Positions 2,400 through 63,705 of a stretch of 64,000 bases of DNA are shown one piece after another (position 1 is the stretch's first letter; each line of letters starts with the position of its first letter). Made by a program: the position numbers and the translations under genes. The notes below the pieces were generated by a model. That model saw nothing but the letters and a program-made list of their open reading frames with translations, was not told the origin of the DNA and made no database searches. Location: positions 7,626,001 through 7,690,000 of the forward strand of contig CM035360.1 of assembly GCA_020137815.1 (NCBI GenBank). Direction: 5' to 3'. The DNA comes from Hormiphora californensis. Taxonomy: Eukaryota; Animalia; Ctenophora.

Positions 2400-5300
2400 T
2401 CAGTGATGTTCACTAGGTGATCTGTCAAAAATTCCTGAAATTTTACTAAAAATTTTGTATTTTTGGGGTGGTTTCCCAATCCAAATGGTCTCAGACAGTC
2501 AAGAATTTTTTGGGGGGGGGGGGGTGCGCACCCCCTGCACCCCCCACCTGGAGCCAGCCCTGCCTGGAATTCTATAATTTGTTATCTTTCTTTCTACAAA
2601 AACTCCTTTAGATACACATTCTACCCAACCTCGACCCATACTAATCACCTCCTCTCTCTCCAGTAGTGGAACCCTCCTCTCCTCCACCTCTTCCACCTCC
2701 TCTACTGGGCCATCTACCAAGATGTGCCTGTACAAGGGACAACCAGTGGCCCTCTACCATTCCATCCTGGTAGACAAGTGTCAGTCCTGTACTTGCGCTG
2801 CCAACCCTGTCCCCATGTTCTACTGCCGTCAAACAGCCGCCTGCAAACAACCTGTTACTGTCGTCATGGACAGTGCTAGTGAGGTGAGTGATCGTGATTT
2901 CAAGGGATTGGTTGGGTAATATATACGTCCCTGCTTCGAAATGAGTCCTCCTTCTTGACGTAATATCACAGTTACTTGACCAATCTTAAATCTATCATTT
3001 CAGAGTGAGAAGACGAAGAAGGCGTGTTACTTTAAGAAACATGGCTACTTCCTGGGTGAAGAGGTAACCGTACAGAAGGGAAAGAGCTGTCGGTGTGCTA
3101 AGATGGGCGACCAATACGTTATCAGGTACTAATATAGTGGGATAATACAGTGGGATGTTGGTTTGGATTGGATATATAATGCTGCAAAGATAGCGTGTCT
3201 AACAGCACATGTTCCCCAGGTGTCTGACCAAAGAGGAAGTGAAGGCTACCCCCATCATCAAGGAAGAGAGTAAGAGTGATGACGACGATGATTCAAAGAA
3301 GACAAGCTCAAGCAATGATGATGATGATGATGATGATGATGACGATGATGATGACAAACAGACTGAAGGATCCACCGACATCTTCAGGTACGAAGTATCT
3401 CAAGTCCCCACCAATACTTGTTCCTATTCACATGACCTTTCGTCCGGAAATCCTTATCTACATCCACTCCAGGAACAAGTATGGATGTTTCTACAAAGGG
3501 TACTTTGCCCGATACGGGCACACAGTCCATCTGGGTAGCTGTTACAACTGTCTGTGTAGGAGGAAACCTGAGAAGATGTTCCTTTGCAAGAAACGTGACC
3601 GCTGTATCAAGGGTAGGTGGATTGGGAGATACTTTACTGACTCACATATAATATCTTTGTGAACGTGTCTGCTAAATTCATGATTCATGAAGTCACAAAA
3701 TAACACCGCCGCCCCTGCAGGTAAAGAGAGGGAGGCCCTTGCTGCCCGGACCTGTACCTGGTCAGGTGTGAACTACTACGTAGGGCAGCAGTTCCGTCTC
3801 TCTGGATGTAGGGTGTGCACCTGTAGCCGCAATGAACAAGGCCCCATTGTTAGGTGCACCTTCGACAGCGCCTGTAAACAGGTAACATGGGGGAGGGAGG
3901 AGGGTATATAATGGTTTAATGGTTTTGTTTCCATTAGCGTTCATGTAGCGGAAACAAGGAACAGTCGTTGGAATTGTTTTGACTGGTCTATGCTAATTTA
4001 ATATCCTCCTTCCATTCAGGGGGCCTCTGCATCTGATAACAGTATGAACTGCCACTACAATGGCCTATCATACACCCCTGGTACCCTGTTCGAGATCAAG
4101 CCGTGCAAAGACTGTGTGTGTACCAGTCGAGGAGGCAAGCCCCGAATCAGGTGTCGATACGCACCTCGCTGCTTCAGAGACAGATATGTGGACAGGGACA
4201 TCGTATACGATAGGGTGAGTGGGTGATATCAACAATGAATACATGTGAAAGTAAGATCCAGAAGTAAAAGTCAGTATAGAAACAACATCTCTAACTACAC
4301 TCTGACACTGTCCTCTCAGATCAGTGTCAGATCCTCTGGAGGCAGGAGAAGGGGTAGTCCCAGCAACCCGTACCTGCCTGACGGTAGTGGTAGGACTCTC
4401 AACGATGTTCGACACCTACACCGTAATGTTCATGTTCACGGATCCTCTGGGCCTCTCCACCATGCGTGAGTTACCAGTTAGTTTCGCCACATTCAACCCT
4501 TATTGGACAATTTTGAATACCTAGATCTACTCCCTACCTCTCTGATCCACGCCTCCATTTCCAGACAAGTGCAGCACGCCCGTACAGCTGGACCCAACAG
4601 GGAGCACTTTGGACACCCCCACGTCTCCCATGGTCACCATGGTCACCACCCTCATCACGGGCCTGGTGGTCAGGTACACGTGATGGATGAAAGGGTTAGT
4701 GGGACTGTCAAGGTTGTCAACATTCACTACGGAGCTACCCAGGAAGCTGTCAGCGGCTCAGGAGCTGGAGGTAGGTTGTGACTCTTCTGAGCTTGATAAC
4801 ACCGTCATTACATGTCATTCTAATTATATTCTCCGCTAGGTTCTACAGTTCACCACACCACAGTCCATGATGGTTCTACTGGTGGTGTGATCAGAGATGT
4901 GGATGGAGATGGAGATATTGATGCTTTCGATCATACTCACCAGAATATGGCAGGGGGATCAGGAGGAAGCACTGGAGCTTCTCACACCGTCCATCTGGGA
5001 GACAAACCCGCTAGAGGGTGAGTTTAGTAGGTTGAGTCATCATTTCAATCTTTCCTAATTTTGAATCTAATAATCCTGACTCCTTCCTTACCTTCATTAG
5101 ATGTACTCTAAAGGGAGAAACAGTGCGTTTCTGGCAGAAGGTGGCTATTTCCAAGTGTCGAGTTTGTATCTGTCTGCCCCATCCCAACCCAGTGTTTTAC
5201 TGTAAGAGGAAGCCTGGTTGCAGTGAGGGAGGCAGCACTGTCAGTAGTTCAACCCCAATGACTGGAAATGTCGGATCTGGACAAGGTAAGATCAGTGCAG

Positions 5301-43600: not shown

Positions 43601-46600
43601 CTGACTATGTTGGAGTCTCCCTCCTCATCTTTCCAGCACAAGTGGTTTGTCATGAGGGCCCTGGCTAAAGTCTGTGCGGATCCCCAGGTATTGTATAGGA
43701 GACACAATTCCCTGTTCCTACTTATGTTATCATAGTAGTTGTGAAAAAATCTACTTGTATGAAAGCCCCTAACTAACTCCCTTCCCAGATTATTGTGGAC
43801 ATCTATTTGAACTACGATTGTGATATGATCCTGGATAACATATTTGAGAGGCTAGTTAACGATATTACCCGCATCGTCCAGGTACAGTTCAGACTCTACA
43901 GTCCCAGTCTTGTTCAGAACAACCACAGGGTCTTGAACAGCAATATATCCTGATTCACCACTCCAACAGACAGTACCTCTCTACAGATCCCACTATAGAT
44001 AGGATCCCATAAACTGATATATAAACTTCCCTTATTATTCAGGGTAACTTGACGGAACATGGCTTGACACCAACCCAGGAACATCAGTTAAGGCACAAGG
44101 GCATGGAGTGTTTAGTATCGATACTAAAGTGCCTTGTAGAGTGGAGTAAGGATATGTACAAGCGACCTGAGATGCAGGCACCCACATCAACAGGTAAGAG
44201 GTGTAGAATGGGACACAAGCATAAATAAAGATAAAGAAATAATCGGAAATGAATTGGAGTATTTTCCAAGTAACTAGGTCAAACAATGGTGTTTTAGGGA
44301 GAAGGTAGGGCCTTTGTCTATCGACATTAGAAATATCACAAAGTAATACAAGTTTTTAATTTTTTACTAATAGTTTCATGCTTTCGCAATCGTCAGAAAA
44401 AAGAAGAAAAAAAACGATTGCGAAAGCATGAAACTATTAGTAAAAAATTAAAAACTTGTATTACTTTGTAATCAGCTCCAGAATCTTGATCCTGTCGAGC
44501 GCTTTACCAGCAATCCCTTTACAAGCAAAGACATTAGAAATATGTAAATAGAGCCATGCTAGGTATAATAGGGATGGGTCATTGAGCAATATACAGTCGG
44601 ACCCCGATTTAGGGCCCCCCGATTTAGTGGCACCCCGATTTAGGGACAGGATTTTTTTCCCCCAATATAGGAAATTAACCTTATTTGACCCCGATTTAGT
44701 GGACACCCCGATTTAGTGGACAAGAGCCTTTCCCCCGAGGGTGTCCCTAAATCGGGGTCCGACTGTACCAATTTGTATCCTCGGGGTGTGTGTGTCTGTG
44801 TGTGTGTGTACCTTCCGTACTTCCACCCACTTGCTGACGATGGGGAGCAGCGTTCCCTTATTGCAACAGTGATCTCCCCAGTACACACGAGCTACCACAA
44901 GCGCCCAACCCACATCCCTGCCCAGTATTGTCTTCAGCTTGGACGGGTTGCCCCGTCTCTGTCTCTGACATAACTATCCCTTTACCCCCTTTACCTATCC
45001 CGGGGTGTGACCTAAAACCATATTCGCTACGATTGGGTCATTTAGCTCCTCTCATTACTTTAGCTCATCTCATTAAATCCTCCTTTACCCTCTTTTTTAA
45101 CAGAGCCTGCAGACAGGGGAGATACATTAGGAGATAAGCTGCAAAGTACCCTCCATGATGCTAGCCCTCCCCGGGCCCTAACTACGAGGTCTGGATCAAT
45201 GAGCTCCCTTACATCAGCAGGACTAACAGAAACTGGTCTGGATAACCCGCTAGAGGTGAGGATTGGGTACAATAAATAGTGCGCCCAGTCCCCACGGGGC
45301 GGGGAGCCTGTACTGCATATATTTTGTACCTTGCGTGATCGTGCTATAAGTAGTAACTACAGCAGTCTATTGTTTAGTGTGAGAAAACTATTAAGTTAAA
45401 GTCCATTCTCTCTGCGCTTTTAAATAACTCTTTATATATTCAACCCCCCGCTACAATTTCAGTTTGAGAATATGAAAAGACAGAAGAGTATTCTAGAGCA
45501 AGGGATAGAGCGGTTCAATAAGAAGCCCAGAAAGGGACTGGAGTTTTTACAAGATGCGGGTTTACTGGGAACTAAACCGATCGATGTGGCAAAGTATGTT
45601 TAGAGAAGAATGTTGTGTATTGTATTGAGAGCATCCAAATGTTATTGTCTAGGTACAATGTCTAGAGACTGACAAATATCTCCTACACAGGTTTCTCCAC
45701 GCAGATGAGAGGCTTAGTAAGACAATGGTGGGTGAGTTGCTGGGTGACGAGAAGGAGGACTTCAAGGCCATAATGTCCTGCTATGTTGACGAGCTGGACT
45801 TCTCGGATATGCCGATAGTGACTGCTCTGAGGGTCTTCCTGGCTGGATTCAGACTACCTGGAGAAGCACAGAAAATAGATAGGTACGCGACATCCAGGGG
45901 GATGATTGATCTAACATCCCGGGCACTGACTGTGTTTTAATTAATTATGTTACCTAGTCCATGCATAATGAAGTGAATCCCCCTCTAATCCCCTAGTATA
46001 CATCACTTCATCATGATGCTATCTAGTATATCTCTCCTCCAACAGGCTAATGTTGAAGTTTGCCCAGCGCTACTATGAGAACTACCCCCAGCTGGAGGAT
46101 AAAGTGTTTGCTAGTGCCGATACATGTTACGTTCTGGCCTACTCAATTATCATGCTGACCACAGACCTACACAATGATCAGGTAGAGGTTACAAACTAGT
46201 TACACAGACCTACACAATGATCAGGTAGAGGTTACAAACTAGTTACAAACTAGTTACAACCTAGTTACAAACTATACTTACAAACTACAGTCGGACCCAG
46301 ATTTAACGAGAAAGAAACAAACTACAAAACAAGCTCATTGATTCAACAAAACAAGGAATTAATTGTCCGTGCGTGACATTGAATCTTGCGAAATATAACT
46401 AACTAGATAGGTACCGTAACGCAAAGTGAACGCAACAAGAACAATCTAATCGCTTCTATTTTATTTCTACCCATCTTTGTAACTCACCGCAAATAAAAGT
46501 GAAATGATTCTAAATTTGCAATTGTTCCAGTTGCACCACTCATGAATATGATATGTAATAAAAAGTAGGGCTATATAGATGTAAATCACCAGTCTTTCTT

Positions 46601-52954: not shown

Positions 52955-53310
52955 TATGGTGGTATAAATGGCTACCCCGCATATTTCAACTGTTTTGTGT
53001 AATAAATTCCTTGTTTACCTCTAATTCATTTGTTTTAATCTGAATATCTCTTAAAAATTTGGATTTTGAAAAATAAAAATCTAAAAACTAAAACCTGAAA
53101 CCGGAAAAGAAAAATACAAAAAATAAAACACAAAAAATAAAATAGAAAAGTAAAATTCTAAAAAATGAAATTTCTGAAAAAGAAAGAAAAAAAACTGAAA
53201 AGTTGTTTTCCTGAAAAGTTGTTTTCTGGATTCATGGTAGAAATGGCTACTTGGTAGAAATGGCTACCCGCATGGCGCGGAAAAGACACGTCGATAACGA
53301 GGTAGAACAA

Positions 53311-54057: not shown

Positions 54058-54481
54058 GTACGTCACTACCCTAACAACATTTGTTTCAGGTTGATTGCCA
54101 ATAACACTCAGTGTATGTTGTCTAGTGGGTACATACAATCCTCTTCCTTATGTCAGAATACACCTCTTAACCACACGTTGTAATGTGACACCACATTCTC
54201 TGTGTATAATCTTTTGTGCTACTTCACCATATATTTGAAGTATTTCTTCTCTACAATCCCACTGCTTCTCAAGAATTTGAATCGTTACGTCACTCAGAGT
54301 TGGTGCCCTAATTTGGTAACATCGTGATCTAACATGATGAAGAAGAGATCGGTAAGTTTCCGGTAACTTGATCACCACACCGCCCTCTACAAATTCTATT
54401 GTCCCCACTGTACATCATTGTTTTGAGTTTTCTTTGCTTCACCCTTTGAGGCTTTCATCACTGTTTGTGTGTGTTTGTGCT

Positions 54482-57400
54482 ATGAAATCCAAGGTACAAT
54501 TAAATAGTTCTCCTAATCTTTTGATTATAGTTCTTGTGTTTATTGGACAAGTTAGACTCGCTGGATATTATTGGATGAAACCAGATATTTCGGTGTTTAA
54601 CACCATCATCAGTAGTAGCTCAAATTAATTTGTTTAAAGTAGTGTTGAAAAGTTTGAAAGTTTCAAACTTTTCAACACTACTTTAAACAAATTAATTTGA
54701 GCTACTACTGATGATGGTGTTAAACACCGAAATATCTGGTTTCATCCAATAATATCCAGCGAGTCTAACTTGTCCAATAAACACAAGAACTATTATCAAT
54801 CATGAGACTCAAGAATAGTCAAGCGCTACATTATTTGTAATCTTTTGATTCTCTTGATTATGTTTCACACCCTCCCTCCAGCTTCCCCTTCAGTTCAAGG
54901 GATCCAATGCAGCTGTTAGTTTACCAGTGGTGTTACCCCGGGGTGATAGCAGAAAGAACCTCCGGAGAACAGAGCAACCCACCTTGTCAAGGATGAAGAA
55001 ACTGGGGAAGAAAGATGTTCTAGATGTACCATTCTTTGATAGGTAACCATGTTAACAACTTGTTAACCTCGTTACCATGTTAACACTGCCAATCATTCAG
55101 GTTGATCGTTGTGAGGTTGAGGGATGAAGGAGGGGTGTTTGTTCCCTACATCCACTACTCCTACCCTGTGCCTGAGGTAGAGACTCAACCTGCCCTCCCT
55201 CTCTTTTGCTTTCCTGACTCGGATAAGATAACAGAAGGTTCGTACTGGGGCAGAGAAATGTGGGATGGGAAACAGGGACATATATGGGGTGACAGGAGTC
55301 AGGACACAAGGTGACAGGAAAGGGGAGGAAGCTGGGGCACGATGATTTCCTTTTAACCCCCTTCTTTCCTCAGCTAATACGGGTGTTGGCAGTAGCTACT
55401 CCTTTGTGCTGACTGACGTGACTGGAGAAAGGCAACATGGGTACTGTAAGAGAGTGAAATCCCGGGACTCTTGTCAGCCCCAGGTAACAATCTCCCATTA
55501 ATTACCTCTAGCTCTGCTTTTAGAAAGATTCCCACATAACAACTATACTTCATCTTTCCTTATTGTAGGTGTACTGTATTATTAGTAAACTGGGTTGTTT
55601 CTCCCTGTATGGTCGACTACTTACAAAACTAGAGGAGCTCCATTCAGTGTCTGATGCGGCGGTTAAGGGGTTCCTAGCTGGTTGCGTTTCACAGTGTGTG
55701 CCAGCCCCTGGTTCTAAAATAACTGTGACCCAACTTAACCACAAAACAGGTACTAAACCAGGAGGCTAGACTTGACACTTTAGACTGGTATAATAGTAAC
55801 TAGAACATGTTGTTCCATTTAGACTGCTGTTCGGGTCGTCACACGAGACAGTCTGAAAAAATAGGGAACTTAGGGAAGAATTTAATACTTGGTCTCTTGA
55901 TATGTTACATCGGGGTTACATCCCACTCCAGGACAGTTTGAGAACGTGGTGATAGAGAGACCCATGGATGGACAGAGATTAGAACATGTTCAACTTGGAT
56001 ACCTCTTCCAATTCCTACAAATAGATCAGGTATGTGTTACTAGAGAAGAGCTCGACGACATGCATTCACTTCTCCAGTTCATTTTCCTCTAGATCTAACA
56101 CTCCCTACTTTTCAAGGTGATCCAGTTATTTGCAAGTGTGTTGTTAGAACGCCGCATCCTAATATCTTCCTCCCACCATCACCTCTCCAAATTGAGCAGC
56201 TGTGTGTCCTGCATGGCTACCCTCACCTACCCCCTCCATTGGGAGTGTATCTTTATACCCATGTTACCACGACAAATGATACATGTGAGTAGGGGGCGGT
56301 GAAATACTTTGTTGTCTTACTCAACAAGAAAAACTGGGAGCCACATTTTGATTATTCTTGAACTGCTCCATCTAGTCTACAGTTCTGACACTAACACGTT
56401 GTCTCCTCTCCAGGCTGTGTTAGCCCCAACCCCCTTCCTGATTGGGGCCCTAACTGAAGATCTAAAGGAAGTTGAGAGGGATCTGGCACACGAAGAGGAA
56501 CCAATGCTGCATTTCAATCTGGATACTGGACAACTTATTAGGTATTACTGATTTTCCAGTATTTACTAGCAGTACTTGTTATAATAGTCTTGGTTGATGG
56601 CTAGCCCATGGCTAGGTTGCCTATAATTGACTTATTATTCCTTGTATAATTGGTACCTTCCTAATCTTCATTTCTCAAATCTAACCCTCCTATCCCCTGT
56701 ACAGTTGTTATGGTGACGAAGAGAGTCTGCTGCCACACAAATCACGTGACATGTTGAGATCTGCTCTGGAGGAGACGGTACAGAATCTGGGACAGGATGT
56801 AGACAAGAACAATCTGGCTATCTCACAAGTGTTTCTCCTCTTCATGTACAAACTACTAGGACACTACAAGAACCATCTGGTATGTTGACATGTGATGTTA
56901 GTTACGAACTACTGCTGTGTTATTCAGTTTAATTTTCTTGGTAGCTCTGACAGTGGCAGTGGAACCTGATTTAGAGTATGACCAGGATGATCAAGCGTCG
57001 ATCCTAAAAACATCGGGGGCAAGCAAGTGGCATCGGAATTTCTTAGTCTCACAAGGGCTCTGAACTCAGTACACTCAGCCCCGGTGATACCAGGGGCACG
57101 GAGAAGTTGCGAAAAAATAACCTGATTTAGATTTTTTTTTTTGAGACTTCCCCGTGCTAACATTTGTCACTCCCTGTATTACATAACATGTACCTGTGTC
57201 CACGGTTTGACAGATGTTAACTCTGCAGCCACATGATTAACCCCGGTAGTAGGGCCGGAATACTGCCTTTGGGTACCCAATCACTGGTACACTACCTAAT
57301 CAAGCGGGTAGTATAGTTACCTGTCTGGCGACGCCGCCCCGTTCTGAACGCATCATCTCGGGATCTGTCGCCGCCAGTCAAGTAGTTACAGTATAAAGTC

Positions 57401-61072: not shown

Positions 61073-63705
61073 ATGTTAGGTTCTATGTCAGAGAGACCTA
61101 AACGGAAGAAGCTGGATGATGCGGGGTGTGGGAGGGCGGGCTGCCACGCTCCTGAGGGGGTAACGTGTGTTGTTGCAGTGGCGTGTAAAGAGACTGAGGC
61201 TCCAGATAACTACTTCTACCATATTTCAGATTCAGAACATGTTTGCAGCAAGTGTTCTAATTATTATTACCGGTAAGAGTTAATAGTTAAAGAGAAACAA
61301 CGATTTTGCAGTACTAATATTCAATTATTCGGTAAGAGTTACACCAAAACTGTCCCGCTATAGGTGCACCAGGGTCCAGGATCAGATCCCCAGTCATCTA
61401 TAACATCCTGGCCTGGTGAAATGCAACTTGTTACCCTCTAGGTCTGATAATAAAACTTGTTCCCCCCTAGGTCCCATGCTACATCATGTCCCCCTCAGGT
61501 CTGATAAACCAGGTCACACAGAGTTCAATGCGTGGCGTGAGAAGTGGCGCACTACCAGTAAATGTGCCCCAGTCACCAAGCTGTTTCTAACAGAGGAGAT
61601 ACTACCATATTGGACCCAGTGTAGTTTGTGTCTGAGGTGGAGGCAGCTACCCAAGGGGGTGGATCTTACCAAGATAAAGCAGGAGACTTGGAGTTGTCTG
61701 GACATGGAGGTAGGGTGTGTGACAGTTTATATTTTAACTGAAAATAACGATCAATTGATTGTTTTTAGCCACATTGTCAATAAAGAAACTAAAACTCCTC
61801 GTTGAGGTTTTAGTTCCACACAATTACTTTCTTCCGAACCATCAACTTCCCAATTGTTCGGTTAAGTTATAAATCCCGCTGTATCCAGTATCCCATCAGT
61901 TATCATGCGATGAGATAGAATCAGCAGATGTCCGTCTGGTAACTGGGTCTACCTGGTTAGAGAAACTAACAGTCCCACCCCTACTGAAGAACTCTCCCGC
62001 TGAACCCTTCCTGGTACACTACTTTAGTGATGGGGTGGGGATGTCAGGGGGAGCAGGTCAAACAGCCAGGGCAGAGGAAGATGTCATTGCAGAACCAGGT
62101 AAGAGAGCCGTTGGGGATCAGAGTTTTTCTTGTAAATTGTCCAACTTAACAACTTTTTATCACGGCAGTGTTAGTTGATGCTAACATTCCCCTTCCCCAC
62201 TAATACTCCCTCTCCCCACAACAGTGGTTCTGAAGGGTCCCCTGGATGGCAACTTTAAACCGTTTAATCAGCCTGGACAGCAGGGTAAAGCACTCTGCTT
62301 TAGACCTGATATCATGGAGACTGATGAAGAGAGAACATTCCCTGAATTCAAACGGTAATTACATCTCAGAGGGGGGAGCCGAGTCGAGAGATATACATAC
62401 TGTCATCGACTCATCGGGCGAGAGTCCGAAGACATTTTTAAACTTGATCAAGATCAGATATCATGGATCAACTAACATTCACTTTTCACTATTCAGGTTC
62501 CAGGTGTTTTATCTGGCTCTCAGGAACCTCATTATAGCAATGTGGAATCTAGATCCCAGGGAGCACGTGACGGTACAGAGGGTGAAGAGGGCTGTCATAG
62601 TTCGTGGAATAGTACGAATCAGGTCGGTAACGTGTTTGTGAACAAACAAATTGTTTACCAAAACCAATTTTTCTTTTTCTCTCCTCACAAAATTCTAAAA
62701 CTAAATCCACCCAACAGGTACAGCTTGGAGGCGATAAGAGTGGTATCCTTCCTGACTCAGCGGGGTATAATCAATACTGGGGTCTTGCCTCTAACAGTCG
62801 ACCCAGATACCTTTCTAATCAGTCCTGAGAGGAAACCTAGTATTGTGGTAGTTGGGGCGGGTATATCTGGTCTAGCTGCTGCACGGCAACTCCACATGTT
62901 CGGGTTAGTGTCGAGACAGATAGATTGTTGAAGGTAAAGATTTCCCACCTCTATTGTCTCATTACCACTGTAACCTCTAACCCAGCCCCCTCCAGTTTCT
63001 ACCCCTCTCCCTAGGTACCAAGTTAAGGTGCTAGAGGCCCGGGATAGGGTGGGTGGAAGGATATGGGACGATCACTCCATGGGGTGTTGTGCTGCTAAGG
63101 GGGCTCAGATTATAACAGGGTGCATCAATAACCCATCTACCCTCATGTGCAAACAGGTATTACAGGAGAGTGATTTTGTACCACCCTGGAATTGTGATTG
63201 TTGTTTGTATTGTTTTTCAGGATCATTAAACCACTCTCCCTCTCTTTAGTTGGGTATCCCCCTGCACCCGATAAAAGACAGTTACTGCCAGCTATTTGAA
63301 GAGGACGGGGAGCCCGTAACACAAGATGCAGACCGCAGGGCAGATCTGCACTTCAATGCCCTGCTAGACGCAGTGGCGGAGTGGAAACTAGAGAGACTGA
63401 ACCTGTCTAAAACTAAGGGCGGAATTGAAAAACTGGACAGTAATAGTACTACAACTGGATCAAAGTAAGCAATATGACACACCACTGGGACTCCAATAAA
63501 CCAATTTCCAATCCATCTATTCCCGATTTTCCCTATTTCAACATGTTTTACCCCTCCCTTCAGAACCTCATTGGAGGAGAAGCTATCTGAGTTACACCGA
63601 CTATCAGTAACTCAAGGAAGACAGAGTTTTACTGATGATGAGAAGCGACTGATACAATTTCATATGAGCAACCTGGAGTACGCGTGTGGGGCATCTCTTA
63701 ATAAG
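61073..63705 (+). CDS. KDM1B: Lysine-specific histone demethylase 1B (LSD2), 5' part; continues past the window
   Basis: N-terminal Cys/His zinc finger (YHISDSEHVCSKC), CW finger LPYWTQCSLCLRWRQLP, SWIRM YLALRNLIIAMW..FLTQRGIINTG, FAD motif VVGAGISGLAAARQL, LEARDRVGGRIWDD, GAQIITGCINNP. Confidence 0.93.

Follow-up and report, generated by a model that had tools for sequence, protein, structure and literature searches.

A fold-back insertion in Hormiphora californensis is probably a retrocopy of a spliced-leader-bearing, hammerhead-containing Penelope-like RNA

Results

A 311-bp fold-back insertion (54527-54837) was analysed in a 64,000-nt stretch of the genome of the ctenophore Hormiphora californensis (the window, CM035360.1 positions 7,626,001 to 7,690,000, or G000:C11:7626001-7690000). 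The genome searched comprised 110.7 Mb in 45 contigs. The results indicated that a short RNA of a Penelope-like element (PLE) of this species, trans-spliced to the spliced leader (SL), was very probably copied back to give the insert, and that the insertion is recent and still polymorphic.

Structure of the insert

Repeat analysis of the window showed that the insert was bounded by 13-bp target-site duplications (TSDs; Table 1). The inverted arms (54521-54659 and 54661-54799) were 139 nt long and 99% identical, their perfect portions (54527-54659 and 54661-54793) were 133 bp each, and the single base G54660 separated them as the axis of the palindrome. The short arm stopped at about element position 134-140, and the extension of 44 nt, the “tail”, was present on the other arm only. 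The tail held a conserved ATG (54802-54804), which opened MRLKNSQALHYL as far as the end of the element. This geometry of TSDs, insert, palindrome and extension had been given correctly to the base in the original prediction, an earlier reading of the same DNA from its letters alone. In a BLAST search against the genome, the window copy was 100% identical over 178 nt to a copy at C1:3434354-3434531.

Table 1. Coordinates of the insert, of its parts and of related loci elsewhere in the genome
Feature	Position	Strand	Basis or remark
TSD, left copy, TAATCTTTTGATT	54514-54526		Direct-repeat search and empty-site joint
Short arm: inverted SL, hammerhead and body, without tail	54527-54659	-	SL-copy positions 2-140 on the minus strand
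Spliced leader, 42 nt, first base at the palindrome axis	54660-54701	+	Identical to nt 3-44 of the published leader
CTACTA, first bases 3' of the putative trans-splice junction, 5' strand of hammerhead helix I	54702-54707	+	Pairing read from the sequence
Minimal Penelope-type hammerhead	54708-54736	+	Family comparison and covariance model
CTGATGA	54708-54714	+	Core
Bulged T	54715	+	5' end of helix II
Helix II, GGTGT/ACACC, 5 bp, UAA loop	54716-54720/54724-54728	+	
GAAA	54729-54732	+	Core
TATC, C17 = C54736	54733-54736	+	Predicted cleavage after C54736
Pseudo-long terminal repeat (pseudo-LTR) body 3' of the predicted cleavage site	54737-54793	+	First base is the 5' end of five older copies elsewhere
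Tail, 44 nt, on one arm only	54794-54837	+	Arm comparison across fold-back copies
TSD, right copy, TAATCTTTTGATT	54838-54850		Direct-repeat search and empty-site joint
SL RNA gene pair, SL/GTAAGCTGAG	C5:6431352/6431978	divergent	
SL RNA gene pair, SL/GTAAGCTGAG	C9:4528296/4528845	divergent	
SL RNA gene pair, SL/GTAAGCTGAG	C11:221868/222494	divergent	
Copy starting at element position 78	C11:7942241-7942391		Read at sequence level
Copy starting at element position 78	C1:8261472-8261573		Read at sequence level
Copy starting at element position 78	C6:3410803-3410950		Read at sequence level
Copy starting at element position 78	C4:8843179-8843316		Read at sequence level
Copy starting at element position 78	C8:3852851-3852999		BLAST coordinates only
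Fold-back axis at SL base 1-2	window; C9:6046615-6046930		
Fold-back axis asymmetric within SL	C1:3434233-3434531		
Fold-back axis inside the SL's own palindrome CAAATTAATTTG	C9:3503088-3503337		
Fold-back axis at hammerhead cleavage site			
Fold-back axis up to 2.5 kb into the reverse transcriptase/endonuclease region	L031, L032		

The spliced leader and its genomic copies

The genome paper gives the H. californensis leader as GAGTTTCAAACTTTTCAACACTACTTTAAACAAATTAATTTGAG and reports it on 56% of Iso-Seq reads (PMC8527503); the 42 nt that start at the axis match this leader at nt 3-44 without a difference. Contigs of run X22 (presumed RNA, with the same organism named on the label; contigs only) covered only the leader of the insert at 54659-54703 and then ran into many unrelated sequences. 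The proposed match of the 42-mer to a ctenophore leader was thus borne out by its identity to the published leader and by its place at the head of many different RNA contigs. It had also been claimed that the leader of the insert ends at the exon boundary and lacks a donor. The SL RNA gene L078 read ...CAGCA/GTTTCAAAC...AATTTGAG/GTAAGCTGAG... (slashes mark exon boundaries or junctions), with the exon ending in TTTGAG followed by a GTAAG donor, whereas the insert has CTACTA at this point, in agreement with the claim. An Sm-like site CCTTTTGG was located between the hairpins of this gene. Copies of the leader followed by GTAAG, which represent SL RNA genes, were found only 15 times genome-wide, as divergent pairs on C5, C9 and C11 and as one cluster at C13:3181663-3195353 in which the copies are spaced by about 740 bp.

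With one mismatch or none allowed, 620 genomic copies were counted for the 3' part of the leader (26 nt), and in 347 of the exact copies the next base was other than G. The genome paper counted 718 leader loci, with genes and retrocopies not separated (PMC8527503). In the window itself a 17-mer of the leader occurred three times (0.02 expected by chance), once at 54619-54635(-). A degenerate SL-like 17-mer with two mismatches was present at 53019-53035(-), about 1.5 kb upstream of the insertion. Other multi-copy sequences (L073, L074, L076, L077, L080, L081 and L084; for example G000:C1:5372400-5373260) consisted of the leader, 5-56 nt, an ATG and an open frame, and they look like retrocopies of other trans-spliced RNAs. 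The L077 family encodes a 2OG-Fe(II) oxygenase domain (E=4.5e-13), and the other families of this kind had no Pfam match.

Acceptor-bearing parents

A BLAST search with 54660-54837 returned at least 58 matches in the genome, and a census based on the 34-nt 3' end identified 33 tail-bearing insertions of the window family, all of which were read. The longer copies (L005-L008, L011, L013, L017-L022, L031 and L032) were 98-100% identical from CTACTACTGATGA onward. Upstream of CTACTACTGATGA they read ...GATTCCTATTCCTAATATGTTCTATTTTTAG, in which CTAAT resembles a branch point and is followed by a pyrimidine tract and then by an AG. The position of this AG, 6 nt upstream of the hammerhead, coincided to the base with the end of the SL in the window copy. 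Acceptor-bearing loci that can be told apart by private SNPs include C6:5376979-5381125 and C7:5005603-5006861. In the window copy, the leader is present from its first or second base on and ends at GAG, and it takes the place of everything upstream of the AG. The parental TTCTATTTTTAG/CTACTACTGATGA of the window family is matched by AATTTGAG/CTACTACTGATGA in the SL copy. Further PLE families had ...CATTTCTTTTCTATTTATAG/CTGATGATGACG (also TTCTATTTATAG/CTGATGATGACG) in the parents and SL/CTGATGATGACG in the SL copies, ...CATTTATAG/ATTATCCTGATGATGCCG (also CATTTATAG/ATTATCCTGATGA) and SL/ATTATCCTGATGATGCCG, and ...TTATTTTTAG/CAGCCTGATGATGTCG (also TTATTTTTAG/CAGCCTGATGA) and SL/CAGCCTGATGATGTCG, so that SL copies were joined precisely at the parental acceptor AG in four PLE families. 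Master copies with a polypyrimidine-AG in place of the leader, next to a reverse transcriptase (RT)/GIY-YIG frame, had been expected by the original prediction and were found. Its inference that the SL was trans-spliced just upstream of the ribozyme is supported by these parents in the four families.

The arrangement was not limited to a few loci. The pattern CAAATTAATTTGAG, followed by 0-8 nt and CTGANGA, occurred 140 times in the genome and not at all in the reversed control, and we estimate that chance alone would yield about 1-2 occurrences for the roughly 620 SL copies. At least 10 distinct types of SL-hammerhead junction were present, with 0-8 nt between the leader and the core. Head-to-head pairs of SL and CUGANGA were seen at least 19 times among the first 100 of the 140 listed, always minus then plus, which is the order of SL 5' ends meeting at an axis; leader copies at palindrome axes beside CTGANGA..GAAA had likewise been anticipated. 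In 241 million metagenome records, the SL-hammerhead pattern gave 21 chance matches, none with the leader or the hammerhead. Since about 140 leader-ribozyme fusions are found in the genome, host trans-splicing appears to set the 5' end of these mobile RNAs routinely.

The leader could also have been joined by template switching of an RT to SL RNA or to an SL-capped mRNA, or it could be the integral end of a spreading chimera similar to a short interspersed element. RTs of retroelements do switch templates, extra bases are seen at some axes, and the SL copies of the window family are 99-100% identical to one another. However, the junction runs exactly from the end of the SL exon to the AG acceptor in four families, which argues for trans-splicing rather than template switching, and the 5' ends of the copies lie at SL base 1-2 and never further upstream. 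SL RNA genes are of the small nuclear RNA type and use upstream promoters, which a retrocopy would not carry. We therefore consider this origin of the leader very unlikely.

Within the element, a (CT)n/(GA)n microsatellite separates the acceptor from the GIY-YIG frame (L031:1172-1340 and 4849-5010; L032:1166-1400). About 63 nt upstream of the AG, L031 and L032 have a donor-like site (GTACGT/GTGCGT), so that the acceptor might be part of a mini-intron which, as in Penelope, has been retained.

The hammerhead ribozyme

A complete minimal hammerhead core had been proposed 6 nt past the leader. Its core elements were confirmed, and a comparison of 14 families revealed an invariant core CUGANGA..GAAA, one bulged U or A, and a helix II of 4-8 bp. 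Covariation was evident in helix II, where 90% of the cells were paired as against 71% after shuffling, with none of 500 shuffles as high. The covariation score was 0.57 versus 0.19, 16 cells showed double changes, and slid controls were 17-58% paired. The variants of this helix were GGUGU/ACACC, GACGU/ACGUC, GUCGA/UCGAC, GCCGU/ACGGC, GAUGC/GCAUC and GGGG/CCCC. In helix I, ACUA pairs with UGGU (54737-54740), as read directly from the sequence. Short palindromes follow GAAA, AUAU in the window and ACGU, AGUACU or ACAUAUGU in other families, and are predicted to form a dimer-type helix III. A bulged base and a palindromic helix III are typical of PLE hammerheads (PMC4209133). Cofolding of two copies paired them through other, longer helices. 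A covariance model built from the 14 families matched only 54708-54740(+) and 54580-54612(-) in the 64-kb window (E=2.9e-6). For the genome-wide hammerhead count with model R1, 150 of about 45,000 rough candidates were scored.

The predicted cleavage after C54736 corresponds to element position 77. Five of the 24 window-family insertions that were neither SL-capped nor parent-type started exactly at position 78 (TGGTTTC...; Table 1), and one further copy started at position 80. By our arithmetic, the binomial probability of the five starts is about 3e-6 for one prespecified position of about 104. The four of these copies that were read at sequence level, C8:3852851-3852999 being left out, have different flanks. 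TSDs of 11-14 bp were readable at C11:7942241, at C1:8261472 and at other copies of the family, and none was identified at C6:3410803. Two truncated copies of the sister family have their ends 0-2 nt away from the site predicted for it, which is no more than suggestive. The starts of the five independent copies may be read as indirect evidence, left by nature, of self-cleavage in vivo, unlike the RNA-seq data of the anole PLE, which contained no reads at the cleavage site (PMC11167929). Copy 5' ends thus give a testable handle on the role of the PLE hammerhead, a question open since 2014.

Relationship to Penelope-like elements

The order of an RT followed by a C-terminal GIY-YIG domain is the architecture of PLEs (PMC8557442, PMC11167929), and it is on this predicted combination that we assign the element to the endonuclease-bearing (EN+) PLEs. 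A GIY-YIG match (E=6e-4) was found at L031:4076-4798 and a weak RVT_1 match just upstream of this frame at L031:3574-4131, both below the curated Pfam cut-off. The GIY-YIG frame of the window family, which lies about 270 nt upstream of the acceptor, was 59% identical to the C-terminus of a sister open reading frame (ORF; L040:1-2208, a readable frame of 736 aa). The sister ORF contains an RVT_1 match with YVDD (E=1.9e-4, below the curated cut-off) and then a CX2C-GIY-YIG end. The RT and C-terminal GIY-YIG ORF was present in the parents and absent from the window copy, and the hammerhead was located 100-270 nt past the ORF stop in four families. The window copy also has other traits of PLEs: the one-sided tail (38-46 nt in other copies), the inverted 5'-truncated arm and the 13-bp TSD. 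The PLE tail has been defined as the 30-40 bp between two RT start sites, and inverted 5'-truncated copies, as well as cleavage and extension of both target strands, have been described (PMC8557442, PMC11167929). The earlier assignment to a PLE-type element thus agrees with the RT/GIY-YIG-encoding parents and with the tail, arm and TSD of the copy. Non-autonomous hammerhead elements derived from PLEs, like minimal dimeric hammerheads, were already known.

The ATG of the tail opens MRLKNSQA(L/I)HYL in the window family and MRLKNSRLVNLL in the sister family, although the DNA around this stretch has diverged. The stretch could represent an ORF start, as in the anole PLE, or a site for protein binding. 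This feature bears on a second explanation, in which the 3' pseudo-LTR acceptor plays no part in forming the short SL copy and the RT instead started internally, near the start codon of the ORF, on a full-length SL-capped PLE mRNA, and only the 5' untranslated region (UTR) was copied, that is, the SL, the hammerhead, the leader and the first 12 codons. The PAc RT does initiate internally, about 111-150 nt into the ORF, with the tail between the two start sites (PMC11167929), the conserved ATG opens the tail in both families, and the product would equal what is seen. At the examined loci, however, the ATG runs into no long frame, and every copy ends at the insertion boundary. We regard copying from such an mRNA as a serious contender but, on balance, a doubtful one. 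Two further observations were made near PLE copies. L008 (G000:C2:9928762-9929134) is nested in the GIY-YIG region of a different PLE, and the short frame of its tail continues into the foreign endonuclease. Ten tandem copies of a 35-nt unit, TATCTAGATATCATGATTCATACCCCCTACCTTTC, lie beside a PLE fold-back at L032:1-353 (G000:C7:5004603-5004955).

Fold-back geometry and polymorphism

In all fold-back copies of the window family, the long arm extended to position 178 and the short arm ended at 132-140; in the sister family the arms reached 141 and 96-104. The axis varied between copies, with the outer ends constant (Table 1), and the arm that reached furthest 5' could be either the long or the short one. 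Because of this last property, a simple snap-back of a single first strand fits less well. The anole PLE protein cleaves and extends both target strands in vitro, and its RT starts at two sites spaced by the 30-40-bp tail (PMC11167929). Priming of two strands from two start sites, as in Penelope, therefore appears to fit better than self-priming of a hairpin. The “folded back” RNA of the original prediction stands as far as the palindromic fold-back is concerned, and it is the self-priming hairpin that gives way to two-strand PLE insertion. The target end TTGAT (54521-54525) is complementary to ATCAA (54795-54799) beside the proximal start site, which suggests microhomology at priming. Fold-backs with two fixed arm ends would then reflect in vivo what was seen in vitro, namely two start sites of the RT and priming on two strands.

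The insertion was traced in short-read contigs. Contigs of run X1 bridged the flank and the element on both sides (54058-54552 and 54812-55364); they came from the source sample and so are not independent of the DNA of the assembly. In runs X5 and X6, from another sample and another study, the sequence was joined from 54513 to 54838 and from 54519 to 54846. At the X5 joint, 324 nt are missing and 13 nt can be aligned to either side; the joint is an empty site with a single copy of the repeat. An empty site in another individual had been looked for on the strength of the earlier reading. Because it was found, precisely, in a second individual, the insertion is taken to be real, polymorphic and recent.

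These data also bear on whether the insert might be a fold-back DNA transposon, a miniature inverted-repeat transposable element (MITE) with long terminal inverted repeats, or a fold-back artefact of the assembly. The best Rfam matches were plant miRNA hairpins derived from MITEs (MIR812), reflecting the perfect hairpin, and the centre of the palindrome was unbridged by short-read contigs. However, the arms are unequal by a fixed tail, the axes vary while the outer ends stay constant, and the parents encode RT/GIY-YIG. In addition, the two flank junctions are held by separate contigs of the source sample, the precise empty site comes from a different individual, and the same architecture recurs at four loci. 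This explanation is extremely improbable, and the MITE reading was rejected on the unequal arms, the variable inner ends, the SL at the axis and the RT- and endonuclease-encoding parents. A non-LTR retrozyme was rejected as well, with one unit per arm, inverted arms and no tandem seen among the copies read.

Host gene and neighbouring features

The insertion had been placed in intron 1 of DENND2. A DENN-domain exon at 56114-56287(+) upholds a DENN gene, and an intronic position in such a gene is plausible. Candidate exons flank the insert, with ATGATGAAGAAGAGATCG/GTAAGT at 54336-54353 and an acceptor near 54890, and RNA contig depth was seen at 54966-55052. Downstream of the DENN gene, exons at 61416-63249(+) with zf-CW, SWIRM and amine-oxidase matches indicate a KDM1B/LSD2-like histone demethylase gene. 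Another fold-back insertion, unrelated to the first, is located at 44323-44544, with the 14-nt direct repeat GACATTAGAAATAT at both ends and without a spliced leader. Its arms meet near 44405 around an A-rich spacer, and its one-sided extension is about 60 nt.

Discussion

The structure and its relatives can be brought together as follows. A PLE transcript would be trans-spliced with the SL at the acceptor, which would give a capped RNA of about 178 nt consisting of the SL, the hammerhead, the pseudo-LTR body and the tail. With both target strands nicked, the PLE RT, acting in trans, would use its two known start sites, the tailed arm arising from the distal site and the tailless arm from the proximal one. 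The two cDNAs would each extend to the capped 5' end, and their head-to-head joining would create the palindrome. As template, a free trans-spliced RNA of 178 nt is more probable than the copied 5' UTR of a full-length mRNA with the SL cap. The acceptor, which is conserved in at least four PLE families, most likely would serve to cap RNAs from tandem or read-through transcripts, as in the resolution of operons. Alternatively, the hammerhead would cut 35 nt further on and yield uncapped RNAs, which would also be retro-inserted. The host would thus supply the cap, and the ribozyme could remove the leader.

A wider proposal is that splicing and cleavage act as a “switch”. The acceptor would be under selection, SL trans-splicing would resolve tandem or read-through PLE transcripts into capped RNAs with an SL and hammerhead 5' UTR, and the ribozyme would represent the uncapped fate, so that the choice would lie between mRNA and template (or decay). 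As parts of the same proposal, the acceptor may be positionally homologous to the 3' splice site of the Penelope intron, splicing would disable the ribozyme in those families in which the SL is joined directly to CUGAUGA and replaces the 5' strand of helix I, and most of the roughly 620-718 genomic “leader loci” would be retrocopies rather than SL genes. We put this proposal forward tentatively, as a possibility that falls a little short of an even prospect.

Several points weigh against the reading of the insert as an SL-trans-spliced, ribozyme-bearing PLE copy, in addition to the unbridged centre of the palindrome. The depth of run X22 over 54705-54791 was low (21.3; contigs only), and reads across the SL-hammerhead junction would in any case be identical to those from genomic SL copies. 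The acceptor may be selected or merely tolerated. An Rfam scan of 54300-55100 at E<=10 matched no hammerhead family, plausibly due to the missing helix III and the bulged base. Helix I has only 4 bp (ACUA/UGGU), helix III consists of four A-U pairs that form between two molecules only, and PLE hammerheads cleave poorly in vitro (PMC4209133). Finally, the genome search found no intact autonomous copy of the window's own family, in which the best open frames were 265-316 aa; among long frames, the closest one, of 816 aa at C1:6936900, is a frame of the sister family, and frames of 929-953 aa were also listed. As the window's own family is present only in 5'-truncated form, its mobilisation in trans is assumed. 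These points notwithstanding, we consider the trans-spliced PLE retrocopy very probable.

In the insert, SL trans-splicing, retrotransposition and a self-cleaving ribozyme come together, three RNA processes of one early-branching animal, and each leaves a footprint in DNA that can be dated. Annotation would profit as well. SL RNA genes make up only about 15 of the hundreds of leader copies reported for the genome, against about 140 SL-hammerhead retrocopies and many other retrocopies made of SL, 5' UTR and ORF. This composition accounts for the mis-mapped “shared first exons” that were noted in the genome paper.

Comparison with known systems

The architecture of the PLE, the minimal dimeric hammerhead and the tail are known, and the coupling of a spliced leader to a ribozyme appears to be new. 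In full-text searches for PLEs or hammerheads with a spliced leader nothing relevant was found, and trans-splicing is unmentioned in the two principal papers on PLEs. The statement in the original prediction that SL-ribozyme coupling had not been described therefore agrees with the literature searched, but an acceptor abutting helix I does have a precedent in a cis-intron of Drosophila virilis. In D. virilis Penelope, a cis-intron is retained whose 3' end has been placed at the 5' end of hammerhead helix I (Cervera and De la Pena 2014, PMC4209133). The likeness extends to differing spliced and unspliced hammerheads, to a helix II whose 5' end carries a bulged base and to a palindromic helix III. 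The difference is that Penelope is cis-spliced, whereas here a leader would be trans-spliced and the spliced product has been retro-inserted many times.

Canonical EN+ PLEs (Penelope/Poseidon, Neptune, Nematis; PMC8557442, PMC11167929) share with the present elements an ORF with RT and C-terminal GIY-YIG, a hammerhead in the pseudo-LTR 3' of the ORF, heavy 5' truncation, an abutting inverted truncated copy, a one-sided tail of 30-40 bp and a TSD. They differ in that many copies here begin with the host SL, joined at an AG 0-6 nt before the hammerhead. The animal non-LTR retrozymes (bioRxiv 10.64898/2026.07.22.740005) are likewise short, non-autonomous hammerhead sequences from PLE pseudo-LTRs, but they form head-to-tail tandems that give circular RNAs, whereas the insert described here has a single unit in an inverted pair, with SL and TSD. 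The SL relicts of dinoflagellate retrogenes (PMC6050394, PMC5585692) are similar in that a DNA-encoded 5' SL marks copies of trans-spliced RNA. In dinoflagellates, however, host mRNAs were copied by unknown RTs, whereas in the animal H. californensis the RNA copied is that of a retroelement itself, with a ribozyme next to the SL.

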